Positions 57,551 through 62,797 of a DNA stretch of 64,000 nucleotides are shown here, piece by piece; the first letter of the stretch is position 1, and each line of letters begins with the position of its first letter. Under the pieces are notes generated by a model. It did no database searches, had not been told where the DNA came from, and was given only the letters and a program-made list of their open reading frames with translations. The translations under genes were made by a program, and so were the position numbers. The stretch lies in the sequence record NC_070936.1. The stretch is one strand, 5' to 3'.

Positions 57551-58395
57551 TAACGTTTCCTTGGAACTGTCATCTTAATAGCATCAGACTTACCTTTCGG
57601 ATCAGCGTATGCGAGATATTTCTTAATCTCATTATTATAGAGATCTTTGAACTCTCTGTGTGCGTCTGCATAACCCTGGATGTCATCTTGAACATCCTCA
57701 ACAGTAACACCGAAACGAGATACTGCTTCTTGCATACCACGACGACAAGTTTTGTAGATATAAGCCTTTACACCTAACTCAACGAGTTCAGCAAACTTAT
57801 CATACATTCTTGGTGGGATTACAGAGAAGTGTTCATCATAGGACAAGATGACTTTAGCAATCATGTTAAACATAGCCGAACCAGCATCACGGATAATAAA
57901 TGAGTTATTACCTGTCATAGTGAAACTGGTGAAAGAACGTTGCACCTGTCCATCATCTAAACCATTAATTAAACGGTTAAGGCTGTTGTTCATCATACCA
58001 GAACCGCAAGCAGCATAGTTATTAAAGTTATAACCATTATTGATAGCTCTGTTGATGTTACCTGGATAAACTTCGAGTACAGATAGGATACGACGACCCC
58101 CTGTCATAAAGTCAGGTACGTTTACAGCTATGATACCGCCTGAAAGGTTTTCAATATGAGCCGCACTAAGATCAATGATCTCTGTTGTCCCACCTGCTAC
58201 GTTTAACAGGGGACCGACCATCTTCATGATAACCTTTTCACGGATACCTTGCTCAACAGTAAACTCGTCATTCACTGGAGACCAAATGCTACCATAACCG
58301 TTGTTTGGGTTATGAAACGCTAGTTTCAATAAATATTCAGATATGTCAGTAGGTCCATTAATAACGTACTCTACTGAAAAGTCAACTGGATTCAC
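57550..58395 (-). CDS. Conserved phiKZ-family protein
   Basis: 281 aa, GTG start with RBS GAGG; TAATG coupling to the next gene. Confidence 0.75.
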   Translation of the reverse strand: MNPVDFSVEYVINGPTDISEYLLKLAFHNPNNGYGSIWSPVNDEFTVEQGIREKVIMKMVGPLLNVAGGTTEIIDLSAAHIENLSGGIIAVNVPDFMTGGRRILSVLEVYPGNINRAINNGYNFNNYAACGSGMMNNSLNRLINGLDDGQVQRSFTSFTMTGNNSFIIRDAGSAMFNMIAKVILSYDEHFSVIPPRMYDKFAELVELGVKAYIYKTCRRGMQEAVSRFGVTVEDVQDDIQGYADAHREFKDLYNNEIKKYLAYADPKGKSDAIKMTVPRKR

Positions 58396-58515
58396 GTTTG
58401 AACCCTCCTAATCACTATTTCGAAATAGACCTTTATAAAAGGCATTGATCTCACTATTCAACCATCCTAGGTTCATAATAGAGAGAAGACGTCATATGAT
58501 TTAAAACTAAACAAA

Positions 58516-58560
58516 CATAAACCCCTACCCCTTCCTTTCGGAGGGAGTAGGGATTAAATG
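58516..58560 (-). terminator. Hairpin terminator family copy 5, closing the minus-strand RNA locus
   Basis: CCCTACCCCTTCC-TTTC-GGAGGGAGTAGGG. Confidence 0.75.
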
Positions 58561-59500
58561 CTTGGCTACATGGACACTCGAAAGGATAATCAATAATGTC
58601 AGGGTTGCAAATCCCGTCTCATTACAATTACCCAGACGGCTGTCTACGGTTGATGTCAACAACTTCCCCTTGGCATAGGGGCGGACCGTTTGCACTTGGC
58701 TTGGTACGCTATAATGCCATATAGTTACCTTCCAATTTCAGCGCTGTTGTCTCACCCTTGAACATCGGGTGGTCGCTCACGGTTAGGGCACGACTGTTCT
58801 ATGACGGTTCCACCAGTGCTGGAGACACTTAAATGGATACCCGTTTCGTCTAATTATTTATTGTCGCCAGACTCGTCAGATAGTACGACATACCCTCACC
58901 AAAGGGATTAGGTTGGTCCTCTGATATCGCATGAGTAACTATGTTACTCTCATAGGCTCTTTGAACATCAATGTTCAACCTTAAGTTATGCTTTCGTTCA
59001 GAAGGACCGATGGGATGTGTTCCCGCATCATCAACTCTCAAGCTCATCACAGTTTCTGCATATATAGCTAGGGTTTGTTCGACGCCAGAACACAAAGGGG
59101 TACAGCGTTCCCAACTTTTGATAGATATTGTTTTTTATGACCGCCCAGGATGGAGTTCGGGTTCTACCATCATCGATAACCCAATAGTCACGTATCGGGA
59201 GTGCATTCAGCTTATGCTACTGGACATTCTATCAAACGCGCTGCTATGTCGCCGAGGTTTACCAGGGCAACACCCACCAGAGGCTACTTACTATAGCGGA
59301 CTACCGCCGCCGTTCACACTCTGGGTTTTTAACTCGGCCTACATTGCCGAGTACTGCCTCCGTAATTTGTCTGCCCAGTGGGGCCGAACTCTACGGAGGT
59401 CTTACATCCCAATACCGTTGACTGGCAAACCCCTTCCAACCCCGGATCAACCGGCTCATTGGACCAGACTTACACTTCCCAACTTAACTGGGTTACTACA
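58561..59500 (-). ncRNA. Large structured ncRNA block 1 (~940 nt), class unassigned
   Basis: No credible ORF. Nested helices such as 58915-24/58998-59008, 59277-82/59319-24 and 59357-64/59392-99. Bounded by a tRNA CCA and a terminator; contains a hammerhead. Confidence 0.75.
58796..58890 (-). ncRNA. Type I hammerhead ribozyme, predicted GUC cleavage between 58803 and 58802
   Basis: CTAT-CTGACGA-GTCT[17 nt]AGAC-GAA-ACGG[33 nt]CCGT-C-ATAG: full catalytic core plus stems I, II and III; loop-II GCGACA is complementary to the 5' flank TGTCGT. Confidence 0.88.
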
Positions 59501-59577
59501 TGGTGGCCCTGACAGGACTTGAACCTGTGACCAGGCGATTATGAGTCACTTGCTCTAACCAGCTGAGCTACAGGACC
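59501..59577 (-). tRNA. tRNA with CAU anticodon (Ile2-like, or elongator Met)
   Basis: GGTCCTGTAGCTCAGCTGGTTAGAGCAAGTGACTCATAATCGCCTGGTCACAGGTTCAAGTCCTGTCAGGGCCACCA; encoded CCA. Confidence 0.95.
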
Positions 59578-59585
59578 ATTGCTTG

Positions 59586-59825
59586 TTATGCTTCTACTGC
59601 TTTCAGATGACGGTCAAGATCTTCGTAACCACCAACATACTGATCGTCAACTACGATCTGCGGAACAGTACGAACTGGACGACCGACGATTTCACCCAAT
59701 TTGGCGCCATCAATACCAGCTTCTACGATATTGATATATTCAACTTCAGCACCTTTGGAATCAGCCAGTGCTTTGGCGCGATCACACCAAGGGCAATTCG
59801 GTTTGCCGTAGATTACAACTTTCAT
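59586..59825 (-). CDS. grx: Glutaredoxin
   Basis: CPWC active site, RTVPQI, VGGYEDL. Confidence 0.95.
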   Translation of the reverse strand: MKVVIYGKPNCPWCDRAKALADSKGAEVEYINIVEAGIDGAKLGEIVGRPVRTVPQIVVDDQYVGGYEDLDRHLKAVEA

Positions 59826-59977
59826 TTATTTTCCTAACTGATTGTAATATGAATAAAACTGAATATCCAAATGAGGAATTCAATAACTCCCCATCCGATA
59901 ACCCCACAGATGAGACCAGCTACTATCAAGGCCCCTGTCCAGGGCCCACTAGAATAAAACATGTGTATCCCTTAAAG

Positions 59978-60054
59978 TGGTCCGCTCTGCTGGGCTCGAA
60001 CCAGCGACCGATTGCTTAGAAGGCAATTGCTCTATCCTACTGAGCTAAGAGCGG
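59978..60054 (-). tRNA. tRNA-Arg(UCU)
   Basis: Canonical cloverleaf, anticodon loop CT-TCT-AA, encoded CCA. Confidence 0.96.
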
Positions 60055-60060
60055 TGAATA

Positions 60061-60148
60061 GCTATCGGGAGTAAGATTCGAACCTACATAGTCTTACGGA
60101 CGTATCCGCCTTCGAATTCCCTCACTAAGTTTAAATAGACTATCCCGA
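60061..60148 (-). ncRNA. tRNA-like RNA A (acceptor and T-arm, no proper anticodon arm)
   Basis: TCGGGA/TCCCGA stem, GTAGG-TTCGAAT-CTTAC T-arm, TAGTCT/AGACTA helix, CGGA-TACG-TCCG hairpin; no CCA. Confidence 0.6.
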
Positions 60149-60166
60149 AAAGTGGCACTTATGATA

Positions 60167-60271
60167 GGTCTCGAGGTCAGGACTCTAACCTGACTACTGC
60201 GATGATGTCCAGTGGTAGAAACTAATCATCCACCATCACATCACTGCGATGTCTTCAACGACATCCTCGAA
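60167..60271 (-). ncRNA. tRNA-like RNA B with elongated central arm
   Basis: TTCGAGG/CCTCGAG acceptor then ACC; TGTC-GTTGAA-GACA D-like arm; ~50-nt central arm; TCAGG-TTAGAGT-CCTGA T-arm. Confidence 0.6.
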
Positions 60272-60374
60272 GTTGGAATTACACACCGAGTAACCGATAG
60301 GTGGGAAGTGGATCCCAGGTATGCGTTTTAGGCCCTGGCCTGTTGTACCCCGGTTGCACTCAGCATGTAATAGT

Positions 60375-60448
60375 TGGCTGGGGTAGTTGGGATTGAACCA
60401 ACGTCCAGGGATTAACAGTCCCCCGCTAAACCACTCAGCTATACCCCA
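60375..60448 (-). tRNA. tRNA-Asn(GUU)
   Basis: TGGGGTATAGCTGAGTGGTTTAGCGGGGGACTGTTAATCCCTGGACGTTGGTTCAATCCCAACTACCCCAGCCA; starts at the base after the HNH stop codon. Confidence 0.93.
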
Positions 60449-60916
60449 TTAAACTTTTGGCTCTATTCCTTGTTTAATACAGTTGTTGCGATATCCATCC
60501 AAATCGAATATCCCATCAACCATATTCTTCATTAGGGTTTTCATCCCCAATCCAGTTCCCTTTGCTGCCTTTCTTGCAGAAGAATAAACTACATTACCCA
60601 CGGTCCAACCATTTGGTCTAGACATCTTAACATGATTGCTCCTATGAACCTTTTCGGAATCTTTCCAATTATCCTTATGGGTTCCTATGGCAATATGTAA
60701 AGGAGAACAACATAATCTATTCCCGCACAAGTGCCTGACAACTGTATTTGGTTTTAGAGTTCCATAAATGTGGGTTGCTACTAATCGATGTGTCGTCCAG
60801 TGTTCACCATCAATAGTTATTTGACCATAACCTTCCCTAGTGCTTTTGGTCCAATTCCAGCAGCCGGTATCGGAATCAAATTTTACATTAGTAAAAACCA
60901 ATTTAACTTTTGACAT
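60449..60916 (-). CDS. Free-standing HNH homing endonuclease (155 aa; start reassigned from 61054)
   Basis: GCWNWT..GYGQI..HRLV...VRHLCGNRLCCSPLHI..GTHKDN (HNH_3 pattern); C-terminal YSSARKAAK helix-turn-helix-like DNA-binding segment. Confidence 0.9.
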   Translation of the reverse strand: MSKVKLVFTNVKFDSDTGCWNWTKSTREGYGQITIDGEHWTTHRLVATHIYGTLKPNTVVRHLCGNRLCCSPLHIAIGTHKDNWKDSEKVHRSNHVKMSRPNGWTVGNVVYSSARKAAKGTGLGMKTLMKNMVDGIFDLDGYRNNCIKQGIEPKV

Positions 60917-60951
60917 ATTAATTCCCGTTCTACCGACTGAACTACATGAGC
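60911..60951 (-). pseudogene. 5' remnant of an enterobacterial-type tRNA-Asn
   Basis: GCTCATGTAGTTCAGTCGGTAGAACGGGAATTAATATGTCA: intact D-arm GTTC-AGTCGGTA-GAAC; collapsed anticodon arm; the ATGTCA variable-loop sequence supplies the HNH start codon. Confidence 0.75.
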
Positions 60952-61615
60952 TTGGGCGGGAGTCACTAGCTCCCAGGTCAGACAATGTCCAACTGTAACT
61001 CGGTTTGATTACCTCACGGCAACCCTGCTCTGGCATCACATGGGTCTCACCCATTATCCCCCAGACTTGGCCTACGATGGCTCCTTTGGCGCACCCAACC
61101 CGAAACGCTCGCTCAAAGACTTATCGTAATAAAGCTTTAAGCAAGAGTTTAACCCACTTGACATCTAAGTCAGCACTGATTCTTACTTGCAATTCAACAA
61201 TCAGTTTCGGTTTACCTGACACCTTGGTCAATGTATCACCCGGTTTGTATCTATCACTTTTGGAAGGGCAGTGGGTTATTTGGTTTTGTCTGCGATAGCT
61301 TGGACCCTGCTCATCTGGATCTCTTCTCCGTGAGGACTGAAAGCACTATTCAAGACTAACGCTTAGTATAACGAAGTATATCTAAGATTCCGAACTTAAT
61401 CGGTAGTTGTTGAGTATCGTAGAGGGACTCGTTTCCAAATTGTGGTCCTACCATTATACAACACTAGTTAGGCTGGAACATGTAATCGCTAGTGAAGTTC
61501 CTATTCGCTGCAACGCGGGCCTAGGAAGGGAATTGGCGAACCGGCTGATCGAGGCGAATGACCATGGCTTAATCATTTCTTTTAGTGTCAACCAGTTCTT
61601 GTTCTTAACAGAGTA
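60952..61615 (-). ncRNA. Large structured ncRNA block 2 (~660 nt), class unassigned
   Basis: No credible ORF. Helices 61151-58/61270-77, 61176-81/61199-204, 61362-61386, 61462-67/61489-94; GNRA-capped hairpin 61008-61023 on the minus strand. Confidence 0.65.
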
Positions 61616-61627
61616 TAGTAAGTTCTG

Positions 61628-61849
61628 TTAATTAAATAATTTTGGTGGTGATATGATATTGGGGCGAGGTCTATAAGTCATCATGCACTTATCTATTCCT
61701 TCCTCTCCCTTTTCATTCCATATCTTAATGATTTCCTTTTCATCCAAGTACTTGCTTAAGAACTTGATCTTCCTTAGAACCCTGTCTGTCCATAGATTGG
61801 ATTTGTTCTTAGCACCCCACCACGATCTGAAGCTAATCTTCACACTCAT
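61628..61849 (-). CDS. Small basic hypothetical protein (73 aa)
   Basis: Start overlaps the end of the Tad2-like gene; phage-like composition. Confidence 0.55.
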   Translation of the reverse strand: MSVKISFRSWWGAKNKSNLWTDRVLRKIKFLSKYLDEKEIIKIWNEKGEEGIDKCMMTYRPRPNIISPPKLFN

Positions 61850-62072
61850 CCCACAGCTTCCAGTCTTCTGCTAAGAGATCAGATACTGAAGGAACCCAGG
61901 TATTGGTGATGAGTCTAACACTATCAACAATAATGAAGAAAGGTTTGATCCCAGGCACATTGTGAATACTCACGTAAAGACCTTTACCGTTCCAACCATT
62001 ACGTTGGTATTTCTTCCCTTCCTTTAGTCCTTCCAGAACTTCTGAGAAAGTAAGTAATTTAACTTTAGTCAT
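61833..62072 (-). CDS. tad2: Tad2/DUF2829-like anti-defence (signal sponge) protein, 79 aa; start reassigned from 62183
   Basis: TFSEVLEGLKEGKKYQRNGWNGKG and WVPSVSDLLAEDW are the DUF2829 signature motifs; RBS AAAGGA 6 nt upstream. Confidence 0.8.
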   Translation of the reverse strand: MTKVKLLTFSEVLEGLKEGKKYQRNGWNGKGLYVSIHNVPGIKPFFIIVDSVRLITNTWVPSVSDLLAEDWKLWDECED

Positions 62073-62085
62073 ATTCATTCCTTTA

Positions 62086-62797
62086 GGAAAAAGGCCCCAC
62101 ACCAAATACAAGGGCATGGGGCAAAGGGAAGTCCAATGGAACACATTAACCATTGGACCAAGCAGTAACCAGCTGGCGGTCACGCTTTTAATGTGGACTT
62201 GTTAGATCACATTAAAAGTGCCAGAGATTCATTTCTCTGGCTGCTCAAAATAAGCTTAAAGCGTTTGATTTTGGAGAAGTTGAGGCGTCAACTTCCATAT
62301 GTGTATTTCAGAAAACAAACATATGGAAGTAGGGTCTTTCGACCCTTCCAACCTCACTGAAGACTTCCTTGCCTTCCCTAGGAATACTATTTCTAATACT
62401 CTTAGGGAAAGCAAATGCATACCAGGAAAAGTAGTATGCACTCACCTTCTTACCTATTGTGAAGATATCAAAGCCGCGGAGCACGATCCCTTCTTTATAT
62501 TCACTCTTTCTAATTGAATGAATTATAAAGAAAGGGGGAAGGGCAGACTTCCCACCTTTGGTACAGGAGTGATGAACAATGGCCACAAAAACCCGGCAAT
62601 GAGCATTAGTGGTAGAAGCACGATGGCAGTTCGTGATTCTTTAAATGGACTTATTCTAATTAAGATCACTTAAAGAATCAGAGATATTAATCGTGACATA
62701 ATATCTCTGGCCTGTGTATTTAATCACAGCAAACGTGTTATGAGCAATGCAACTTGAACAACAAAAAGAGAAGTGGAAGAAGTTCACTTTTTGTTAC
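62086..62797 (-). ncRNA. Large structured ncRNA or leader, block 3 (~710 nt), class unassigned
   Basis: Almost continuous long helices (62131-39/62150-58, 62185-95/62208-18, 62291-302/62319-30, 62635-44/62670-79, 62679-88/62700-09); GAAA tetraloop on the minus strand (62331-46); ends in GCCCCA/TGGGGC-CTTTTT. Confidence 0.7.

Follow-up and report, generated by a model that had tools for sequence, protein, structure and literature searches.

An HNH_3 gene joined without spacer to a divergent tRNA-Asn at the site of a truncated host-like tRNA-Asn in Klebsiella phage N1M2: a probable homing cassette

One HNH gene between two tRNA-Asn alleles

We analyzed a 64,000-nucleotide (nt) stretch of sequence record NC_070936.1 (the window), in which a gene for an HNH_3 homing endonuclease lies between the first 27 nt of one tRNA-Asn gene and a complete tRNA-Asn gene of different sequence. 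Positions 58300-62200 of the window match at 100% identity the genome of Klebsiella phage N1M2, an OBP-like jumbo phage of the genus Nimduovirus (253 kb; MN642089 / NC_070936). The paper describing N1M2 lists three transfer RNA (tRNA) genes and mentions neither the HNH gene nor homing (PMC7058600). ARAGORN called three tRNA genes on the minus strand, a tRNA-Met (59501-59577) and the tRNA-Arg(UCU) and tRNA-Asn(GUU) listed with the other features of the locus in Table 1.

The open reading frame (ORF) of the HNH gene ends in ...CCA AAA GTT TAA, and the base following the stop codon, a U at position 60448, is already nt 1 of the complete tRNA-Asn, leaving a spacer of 0 nt; no other long ORF ends at this junction. 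The Rfam tRNA model matched 60448-60378 with 64.3 bits over model positions 1-71 and with 0 non-canonical pairs, and the 3' end of the gene reads ...CCCCA-G-CCA. Single-sequence minimum-free-energy folds, with z from -0.8 to -1.4, are uninformative for tRNAs, and covariance-model scores were taken instead. This new-type tRNA-Asn agrees at only 45 of 76 aligned positions (59%) with the resident allele, the one whose 5' part lies on the other side of the HNH gene. A preliminary description of this DNA had claimed that the stop codon is directly followed by a full but divergent tRNA-Asn(GUU), and this holds. Independent contigs, from a wastewater metagenome and another sample, span 59900-61700 with 4-6 substitutions and no indels, and the arrangement is therefore not an assembly artefact.

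The same description held that the resident tRNA-Asn had been destroyed, and comparison with related phages bears this out. Yubaba and Sureiya, two Serratia phages that are the closest sequenced relatives of N1M2, lack the HNH gene, resemble N1M2 at 82-93% nucleotide identity in the flanks and carry a complete 76-nt tRNA-Asn at the place of the N1M2 insertion. The remnant matches nt 1-27 of the intact gene at 27 of 27 positions in Yubaba and with one D-loop difference in Sureiya, and over the 150 nt to the left of the junction N1M2 and Yubaba are 98% identical. No 3' half of the resident tRNA-Asn was found anywhere in the 64-kb window. Intact resident-type genes without an HNH gene are also present in Shewanella phage SXP01, Pantoea phage Survivor and Pseudomonas phage OBP. 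The resident allele is host-like: among 5426 complete E. coli genomes, 5425 have a chromosomal tRNA-Asn that is 91-97% identical to it. The new allele reaches at most 77% in E. coli genomes, with a plasmid-borne tRNA-Asn.

On the right the insert ends with the tRNA. Homology (88%) to the sequence 3' of the tRNA-Tyr gene of Edwardsiella phage pEt-SU begins at the 60375-60374 boundary, directly behind the CCA; this tRNA-Tyr gene stands where N1M2 has the new tRNA-Asn. Together with the left boundary at the remnant, this defines an inserted unit of 550 bp (60375-60924) consisting of an 8-nt leader, the ORF and the tRNA. The base composition of this cassette does not set it apart as foreign, and a scan for consensus promoters and terminators near it returned nothing exceeding shuffled expectation.

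The HNH protein matches PF13392 (HNH_3) over residues 42-83 with 38.1 bits against a cut-off of 24.8, and its only Pfam matches are HNH_3 and zf-His_Me_endon. Residues H43, H62, C64, N66, C70, H74 and N83, comprising the catalytic His/Asn and the zinc-binding Cys/His residues, are invariant across 12 homologues. Since the homologues align starting at residues 1-4, the true start is the ATG at 60916-60914 and not the upstream ATG chosen in RefSeq. The RefSeq coding sequence PQB72_gp256 (195 aa, 60449-61036, minus strand) begins 120 nt too far upstream and reads across the tRNA-Asn remnant and a conserved non-coding leader that is also present in HNH-less relatives. A PDB sequence search with the protein gave no match. 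Foldseek, run on a structure model of modest quality (predicted local distance difference test, pLDDT, 68), returned I-HmuI (1u3e), an HNH homing endonuclease that nicks DNA, as the top match over the whole length, a weak one (probability 0.97, E 2.7e-3, template modelling (TM) score 0.32, 18% identity), followed by I-PpoI. The N1M2 enzyme could thus possibly nick its target rather than cut both strands. A C-terminal P-K-[VLI] motif is kept across the clade even where no tRNA lies downstream, which indicates that the end of the ORF is set by the protein and that the tRNA is butted against it.

Table 1. Features of the HNH/tRNA-Asn locus (positions in the window)
Feature	Position	Strand	Basis
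HNH_3 homing-endonuclease gene, 155 aa (P0001), start ATG 60916-60914	60449..60916	-	Pfam HNH_3; homologue alignment
TAA stop codon of HNH gene, touching tRNA nt 1	60449..60451	-	sequence
8-nt leader of insert, GAATTAAT	60917..60924	-	sequence
Replacement (new-type) tRNA-Asn(GUU), 74 nt, CCA encoded, U1-A72, discriminator G73	60375..60448	-	ARAGORN, Rfam
Remnant of resident, host-like tRNA-Asn, nt 1-27 (acceptor 5' strand, D arm, nt 26-27), GCTCATGTAGTTCAGTCGGTAGAACGG	60925..60951	-	identity to Yubaba
Left flank / homology arm, conserved non-coding leader before tRNA-Asn site, outside cassette	60952..61615	-	homology to Yubaba
Right flank, conserved tRNA-like/structured RNA modules, outside cassette	60055..60374	-	homology to pEt-SU; modules also in SXP01, Survivor, L014
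tRNA-Arg(UCU), next gene in same RNA cluster	59978..60054	-	ARAGORN + Rfam

The unit in related phages and the wider HNH clade

Protein searches identified three further lineages of the element (L013, L032 and the L014 type) in contigs of OBP-like jumbo phages, syntenic with N1M2 in having a Tad2-like gene, a glutaredoxin gene and a DUF7484 virion protein around the site. The close clade thus consists of four lineages only. At this fixed site the HNH gene is present in N1M2, L032, L013 and L014, and the target is intact in Yubaba, Sureiya, SXP01, Survivor and OBP.

The lineage most like N1M2 in arrangement is L013 (IMG/VR 3300045943_000001, 271 kb), whose HNH protein is 60% identical to that of N1M2. 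Its order is a remnant (TCTCCCATAGTTCAGTCGGTAGAACG), a leader with a GAGG Shine-Dalgarno sequence, the HNH gene, TAA, a new-type tRNA-Asn, 4 nt and a tRNA-Ser; the matching empty site is found in Survivor and OBP, where the resident tRNA-Asn is followed by 4 nt and the tRNA-Ser. The remnant, HNH gene and new tRNA of L013 have flanks that differ from those of N1M2 on both sides. The zero spacer is repeated in L013 (TAA) and in L032 (TGA), with HNH proteins only 60-71% identical. Repeated in two diverged contigs, it is inherited with the unit and is no accident of a single genome; it persists at 62-70% protein identity even as the stop codon changes (TAA, TAA, TGA). In OBP-like phages the new-type tRNA occurs solely beside an HNH gene, and always with a spacer of 0. 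Six differences separate the N1M2 and L013 copies: two double compensatory pairs (acceptor 7/66 and one T-stem pair), one change from G-C to G-U and one T-loop position. All preserve the structure, the mark of structural constraint, or purifying selection, on the new-type tRNA.

In L032 (Logan SRR31860690 contig, 121 kb; HNH 71% identical to N1M2), the remnant (GCTTGTGTAGTTCAGTCGGTAGAA) is followed by the HNH gene and by a TGA directly touching a chimeric tRNA (L032:3469-3543). All diagnostic bases of the chimera at nt <=28 are new-type and all at nt >=42 are resident-type, and the 13 nt between the two halves, GGACTGTTAATCC, are common to both alleles. The chimera is a direct recombination scar, left when the HNH gene entered a resident tRNA-Asn and the crossover on the right fell within the anticodon-loop sequence that both alleles have. 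The 3' acceptor strand of the chimera (CACAAGC) is complementary at 7 of 7 positions to the upstream remnant (GCTTGTG) and at only 3 of 7 to the chimera's own 5' end. ARAGORN did not call it, and the Rfam model gave 41 bits over positions 5-66 only; presumably this tRNA is non-functional.

The L014 type (IMG/VR 3300031419_000002 and 23 other contigs) has an HNH protein 60% identical to that of N1M2 and 92% identical to that of L013. Its remnant ends at the same position (GCTTCCATAG...GAACG) and stands behind the same conserved non-coding leader as in N1M2; after the HNH gene come the stop codon TAG, a hairpin and a downstream module, and no tRNA was found in 12.7 kb. A search of IMG/VR for relatives of the ORF upstream of this HNH gene gave only the same contig. 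In all four lineages the remnant stops at nt 24-27. The 5' ends differ (GCTCATG.. in N1M2, GCTTGTG.. in L032, TCTCCCA.. in L013, GCTTCCA.. in L014), so that the acceptor-stem part varies by lineage and mirrors the natural allelic variation of the resident gene. The sequences beyond the cassette vary among the HNH lineages on the left and on the right as well. The preliminary description had taken the HNH gene and the new tRNA for a cassette, a view upheld by the occurrence of the unit with other flanks in L013 and by the recombinant of new and resident alleles in L032.

The start of the HNH gene differs between lineages. A weak Shine-Dalgarno-like GGGA straddles the junction of remnant and leader in N1M2, and in L013 and L014 a GAGG lies 6 nt ahead of the ATG at the corresponding place. 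The N1M2 start region, TATGTCAAAAGTT (60906-60918, minus strand), matches the variable loop and T stem of the resident tRNA, TATGTCACAGGTT, at 11 of 13 positions, a score reached by 14 of 2000 shuffles. We considered whether the start codon had been recycled from the tRNA variable loop and rejected the idea, as relatives start otherwise (GTG TCA AAG in L032, ATG GAT TTA in L013 and L014). The match is probably coincidental, and the start codon most probably belongs to the ORF itself.

Among GenBank phages nothing exceeded 80% identity to the new-type allele; pattern scans of IMG/VR returned no match for a 39-mer of the tRNA and the L013 contig only for a 32-mer; two new-type patterns had no match in 185,579 GTDB species genomes, and a pattern of the anticodon arm had none in metagenome contigs. 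These scans demand exact matches, and diverged copies may escape them. The new allele was thus not found in any relative that never had the HNH gene. A looser pattern of the 5' part matched solely in two unrelated tRNA-rich contigs, L039 and L040. Their tRNA-Asn (L040:3708-3790, L039:2436-2518) is 89-93% identical to the new type over aligned positions, has a variable arm of about 13 nt, 9 nt longer than in the new type, and lies among more than 20 clustered tRNA genes of an unclassified phage, with no HNH gene within 13 kb. This phage has no DNA similarity to N1M2 or OBP-like phages. Its tRNA-Asn is the nearest HNH-free relative of the N1M2 replacement tRNA and fits the foreign origin that the preliminary description had expected.

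Homologues of the HNH protein are associated with tRNA genes well beyond this site. Each of the 12 homologues examined, which share 38-75% identity with one another or with the N1M2 protein, lies inside a tRNA cluster. In six loci the insertion is within a tRNA gene at nt 24-32, from which it would follow that the enzymes recognize tRNA gene sequence. In Aeromonas phage PS1, nt 1-30 of a tRNA-Met are followed by the HNH gene, 20 nt and a full tRNA-Met that shares only 66% identity with the resident one. In the sister phage AVP1 the same tRNA-Arg and spacer TTTTACA lead into an unbroken resident tRNA-Met at this place, and there is no HNH gene. In Klebsiella phage Centimanus the order is a full variant tRNA-Met, 22 nt and an HNH gene whose stop codon touches a fragment of the resident tRNA-Met, its final 31 nt. 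The sister phage KpLz-2_45 has this tRNA-Met unbroken, and in both phages TATTT and a tRNA-Leu come next. KpLz-2_45 itself has an HNH gene after nt 1-29 of a tRNA-Arg that is intact in Centimanus, with no replacement. The contig L036 has an HNH gene (104-690) in the anticodon loop of a tRNA-Asn with both halves kept; its last three codons, AAG CTG TAG, are also nt 37-45 of the tRNA, an overlap that could be microhomology at the insertion point. In L037 the HNH gene follows nt 1-26 of a tRNA-Asn-like gene. There are thus at least three instances (Asn in N1M2/L013, Met in PS1, Met in Centimanus) of a remnant accompanied by a divergent full copy of the same isoacceptor, with nucleases only 39-48% identical. 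It is conceivable, though somewhat less likely than not, that this whole HNH_3 clade of large phages is specialized on tRNA genes, inserting in them at nt 24-32 or at the variable loop, and spreads as a nuclease together with a divergent, presumably uncuttable tRNA of the same isoacceptor. In Alishewanella phage Slicko01, an annotated tRNA-Ser upstream of an HNH homologue (L009:1400-1478) has the anticodon loop TCT and no ARAGORN call, and it may be another damaged or chimeric tRNA.

The surroundings of the cassette in N1M2 are themselves composite. The conserved non-coding leader on the left also precedes the HNH gene of L014. To the right, a tRNA-like element of 87 nt occupies 60063-60149 (minus strand); it has an acceptor stem and a T arm, lacks normal D and anticodon arms and scores only 20.7 bits with the Rfam tRNA model. 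Unannotated copies with 79-86% conservation exist in the Serratia phages Moabite and 2050HW, SXP01, and T4-like phages of Klebsiella and Salmonella. Two more conserved non-coding modules occupy 60150-60374 (minus strand), one of them ending in a T-arm-like hairpin and an acceptor-like stem, and are common to pEt-SU, SXP01, Survivor and L014 in differing combinations. The tRNA cluster is thus pieced together, mosaic-like, from small RNA modules. Identity to Yubaba (L002) falls to 57-75% over 59600-60084, from the glutaredoxin gene to the tRNA-Arg, against 82-93% elsewhere and 98% just left of the cassette; the exchange may have reached about 1.3 kb beyond the insertion point on the right. On the other side, the gene at 61833-62072 (minus strand) bears the public label 'methionine--tRNA ligase' and actually encodes a 79-aa Tad2-like (Thoeris anti-defence 2) protein (PF11195, 64 bits).

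Proposed mechanism and alternative explanations

The comparisons show that the remnant (nt 1-24/27), the short leader with the HNH gene and the new tRNA-Asn form a unit that is polymorphic for presence and absence, has varied flanks and has recombined with resident alleles. The best explanation, and in our judgment a likely one, is that a free-standing HNH_3 homing-endonuclease gene has taken the place of nt 28-76 of a host-like tRNA-Asn, in the cluster of tRNAs and non-coding RNAs typical of OBP-like jumbo phages, and is fused to a foreign, divergent and functional tRNA-Asn. In a mixed infection, the enzyme would nick or cut the intact resident tRNA-Asn of an HNH-less phage near nt ~24-29, where the D stem meets the anticodon stem, and repair would copy the HNH gene from the HNH-bearing genome, with the left crossover within the remnant or the leader. 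A right crossover beyond the new tRNA would co-convert the whole replacement, as in N1M2 and L013; one within the shared 13-nt block of the anticodon loop would give the chimera of L032. The new tRNA would then provide tRNA-Asn, and the zero spacing would hold nuclease and tRNA together. If the cluster is transcribed as a single precursor, ribonuclease P (RNase P) would end the HNH message exactly at the UAA (...GUU UAA), and HNH expression would probably be limited, as proposed for segB of phage T4.

The predicted target follows from what the HNH-bearing genomes tolerate. All of them keep nt 1-24/27 of the resident gene as the remnant, and L032 also keeps nt 29-76. Only the contiguous junction at nt 24-29 is missing from all of them, and the recognition site should therefore span the insertion point, like classical intron homing sites; the comparison thus predicts a site at the junction of D stem and anticodon stem of the enterobacterial-type tRNA-Asn gene. 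At this junction the new allele reads GGTTTAGCGGGGGACTG and the resident GTCGGTAGAACGGCGGACTG. To the left of the shared block about half of the bases differ between the two alleles, and the new allele should therefore be protected from cleavage. The deduction of the recognition site presumes an active L032 enzyme, and the L032 HNH protein keeps every invariant residue. The position of the cut, the choice between nick and double-strand break and the immunity of the new allele are all deduced from such comparisons.

Several observations weigh against this explanation. Only three contigs have new-type sequence beside an HNH gene. The L014-type phages (24 contigs) hold the HNH gene without any tRNA-Asn and L032 has a mismatched chimera, which shows that these phages can dispense with tRNA-Asn; the tRNA may be a hitchhiking flank and not a selected repair. 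The differing acceptor stems of the remnants could be variable co-conversion tracts of one ancestral insertion, not independent insertions. The structure model and the I-HmuI match are as modest as described above, and cleavage by the HNH protein, as well as co-transcription and RNase P processing at the N1M2 site, are inferred. The preliminary description had also proposed that the new tRNA restores the lost function. This part stands for N1M2 and L013, with their intact and constrained tRNA, and does not extend to the two of four close lineages that lack a working replacement; restoration of function is frequent, not obligatory.

A rather unlikely alternative, differing from the preferred explanation solely in whether the tRNA was selected and sharing its mechanism of movement, is that an ordinary free-standing HNH gene once lay just upstream of a new-type tRNA-Asn in a tRNA-rich phage. 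The tRNA would then be a co-converted flank, the junction historical and the replacement unselected. The HNH-free tRNA-Asn of L039 and L040 would suit such an origin, as would the L014-type phages and L032, which manage without a working tRNA-Asn. The ORFs of the clade also usually reach the edge of the insert, the stop codons of Centimanus and L036 touching 3' fragments of tRNAs. Unselected carriage is harder to reconcile with the purifying selection on the new tRNA and with a same-isoacceptor pairing seen three times with such divergent HNH proteins.

We regard as improbable, and clearly more so, the idea that the divergent tRNA-Asn is itself the selected payload, escaping a host nuclease that targets tRNA or supplementing depleted tRNA-Asn, with the HNH gene spreading or amplifying it. 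Amplification of tRNA genes driven by SegB has been documented as anti-defence, for tRNA-Tyr against Septu (PMC13096335), and at the N1M2 site a host-like body (91-97% identical to E. coli) has been swapped for one only 59% identical. However, the two alleles do not differ in the anticodon loop or in most of its stem, where anticodon nucleases usually attack; there is no tandem amplification at the N1M2 locus, and some lineages are without any tRNA-Asn. We also know of no defence system that targets tRNA-Asn specifically, which counts against this idea. Least probable by far is a group I or other intron in the tRNA-Asn gene, with the remnant as a 5' exon spliced to a 3' exon. The insertion is near the anticodon arm, where bacterial tRNA group I introns are sited, and L036 and L032 keep 3' tRNA sequence past the ORF. 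Yet Rfam gave no group I or II match at gathering or E<=5 in the window and five related loci, the insert of 8 nt and an ORF leaves no space for a ribozyme core, the N1M2 window holds no 3' half complementary to the remnant, and the joined parts of L032 would still miss nt 25-28.

Significance and comparison with known systems

Homing endonuclease genes normally spare their host by residing in self-splicing introns, inteins or intergenic positions. The N1M2 element breaks an RNA gene yet appears to bring a working substitute that its nuclease should not recognize, and the chimera of L032 preserves the trace of one such recombination, its crossover narrowed down to 13 nt. Such insertions explain truncated 'pseudo-tRNAs' in phage tRNA clusters, and for annotation, tRNA fragments beside HNH genes should be treated as insertion scars. 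They also illustrate a route by which tRNA alleles of unrelated phages can displace host-like tRNAs, which bears on the counter-defence tRNA cargo moved by SegB. If the specialization holds across the clade, it would be a third way, besides self-splicing and intergenic insertion, to dodge the cost of destroying the target. It would then also be a main driver of tRNA allele turnover in the tRNA clusters of jumbo phages, and possibly of the spread of host-unlike tRNA bodies.

The closest known system is SegB of phage T4, a free-standing homing endonuclease of the GIY-YIG family located in the T4 tRNA gene cluster (PMC2330249, PMC13096335). SegB recognizes tRNA gene sequence; its site of 27 bp includes the T-psi-C motif, and its best site is in the tRNA-Asn gene of T2L (PMC2330249). 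The segB gene is transcribed inside a tRNA precursor; when tRNA-Arg matures, the transcript is cut just ahead of the segB stop codon, behind the last sense codon. The authors proposed that this restrains expression, citing in that context the HNH genes that they place in the tRNA region of T5 (PMC2330249). The preliminary description had drawn the likeness to SegB, and it proves apt and closer than claimed, since segB, too, has its stop codon where RNase P processes the following tRNA (PMC2330249). Both genes are inside a phage tRNA cluster with the end of the ORF at the 5' processing site of the following tRNA. SegB homing brings neighbouring tRNA genes with it, and in the N1M2 unit the HNH gene and the new tRNA travel together. 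By function, the N1M2 HNH gene would belong with segB, whose homing in a phage tRNA cluster is likewise intronless. The two are not homologous, however: the N1M2 nuclease has the HNH_3 fold and not GIY-YIG, and unlike segB its gene sits in a tRNA gene, leaves a remnant and is paired with a divergent tRNA of the same isoacceptor. The RNase P cut in N1M2 would leave the stop codon intact, in contrast to the cut described for T4 segB, and the predicted target is at the junction of D arm and anticodon stem, whereas that of SegB is in the T arm.

Other free-standing endonucleases of T4 with intronless homing (SegF, SegG and MobE) lie beside an uncut variant of their target gene, and when they cut the sensitive allele of a co-infecting phage, their own gene and flanking markers are co-converted. 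In these systems the resistant allele has few polymorphisms and there is no remnant, whereas N1M2 has a 59%-identical foreign tRNA and a 27-nt stump. I-HmuI of the Bacillus phage SPO1 (PDB 1U3E) resembles the N1M2 protein in its N-terminal HNH domain and C-terminal DNA-binding part, weak as the structural match is (TM 0.32), but its gene lies within a group I intron that interrupts a DNA polymerase gene. In phage T5, the HNH ORFs F-TflI, F-TflII and F-TflIV lie in the tRNA cluster, and precursor processing has been proposed to limit their expression. We know of no report for T5 of truncated target tRNAs paired with replacements of the same isoacceptor, and in the searchable literature we found no description of an HNH element with a tRNA stump and a same-isoacceptor replacement. 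What sets the element apart from these systems is its position inside an RNA gene of which a stump remains, a presumed resistant copy that is foreign (59% identical) and a natural chimera that preserves the crossover.

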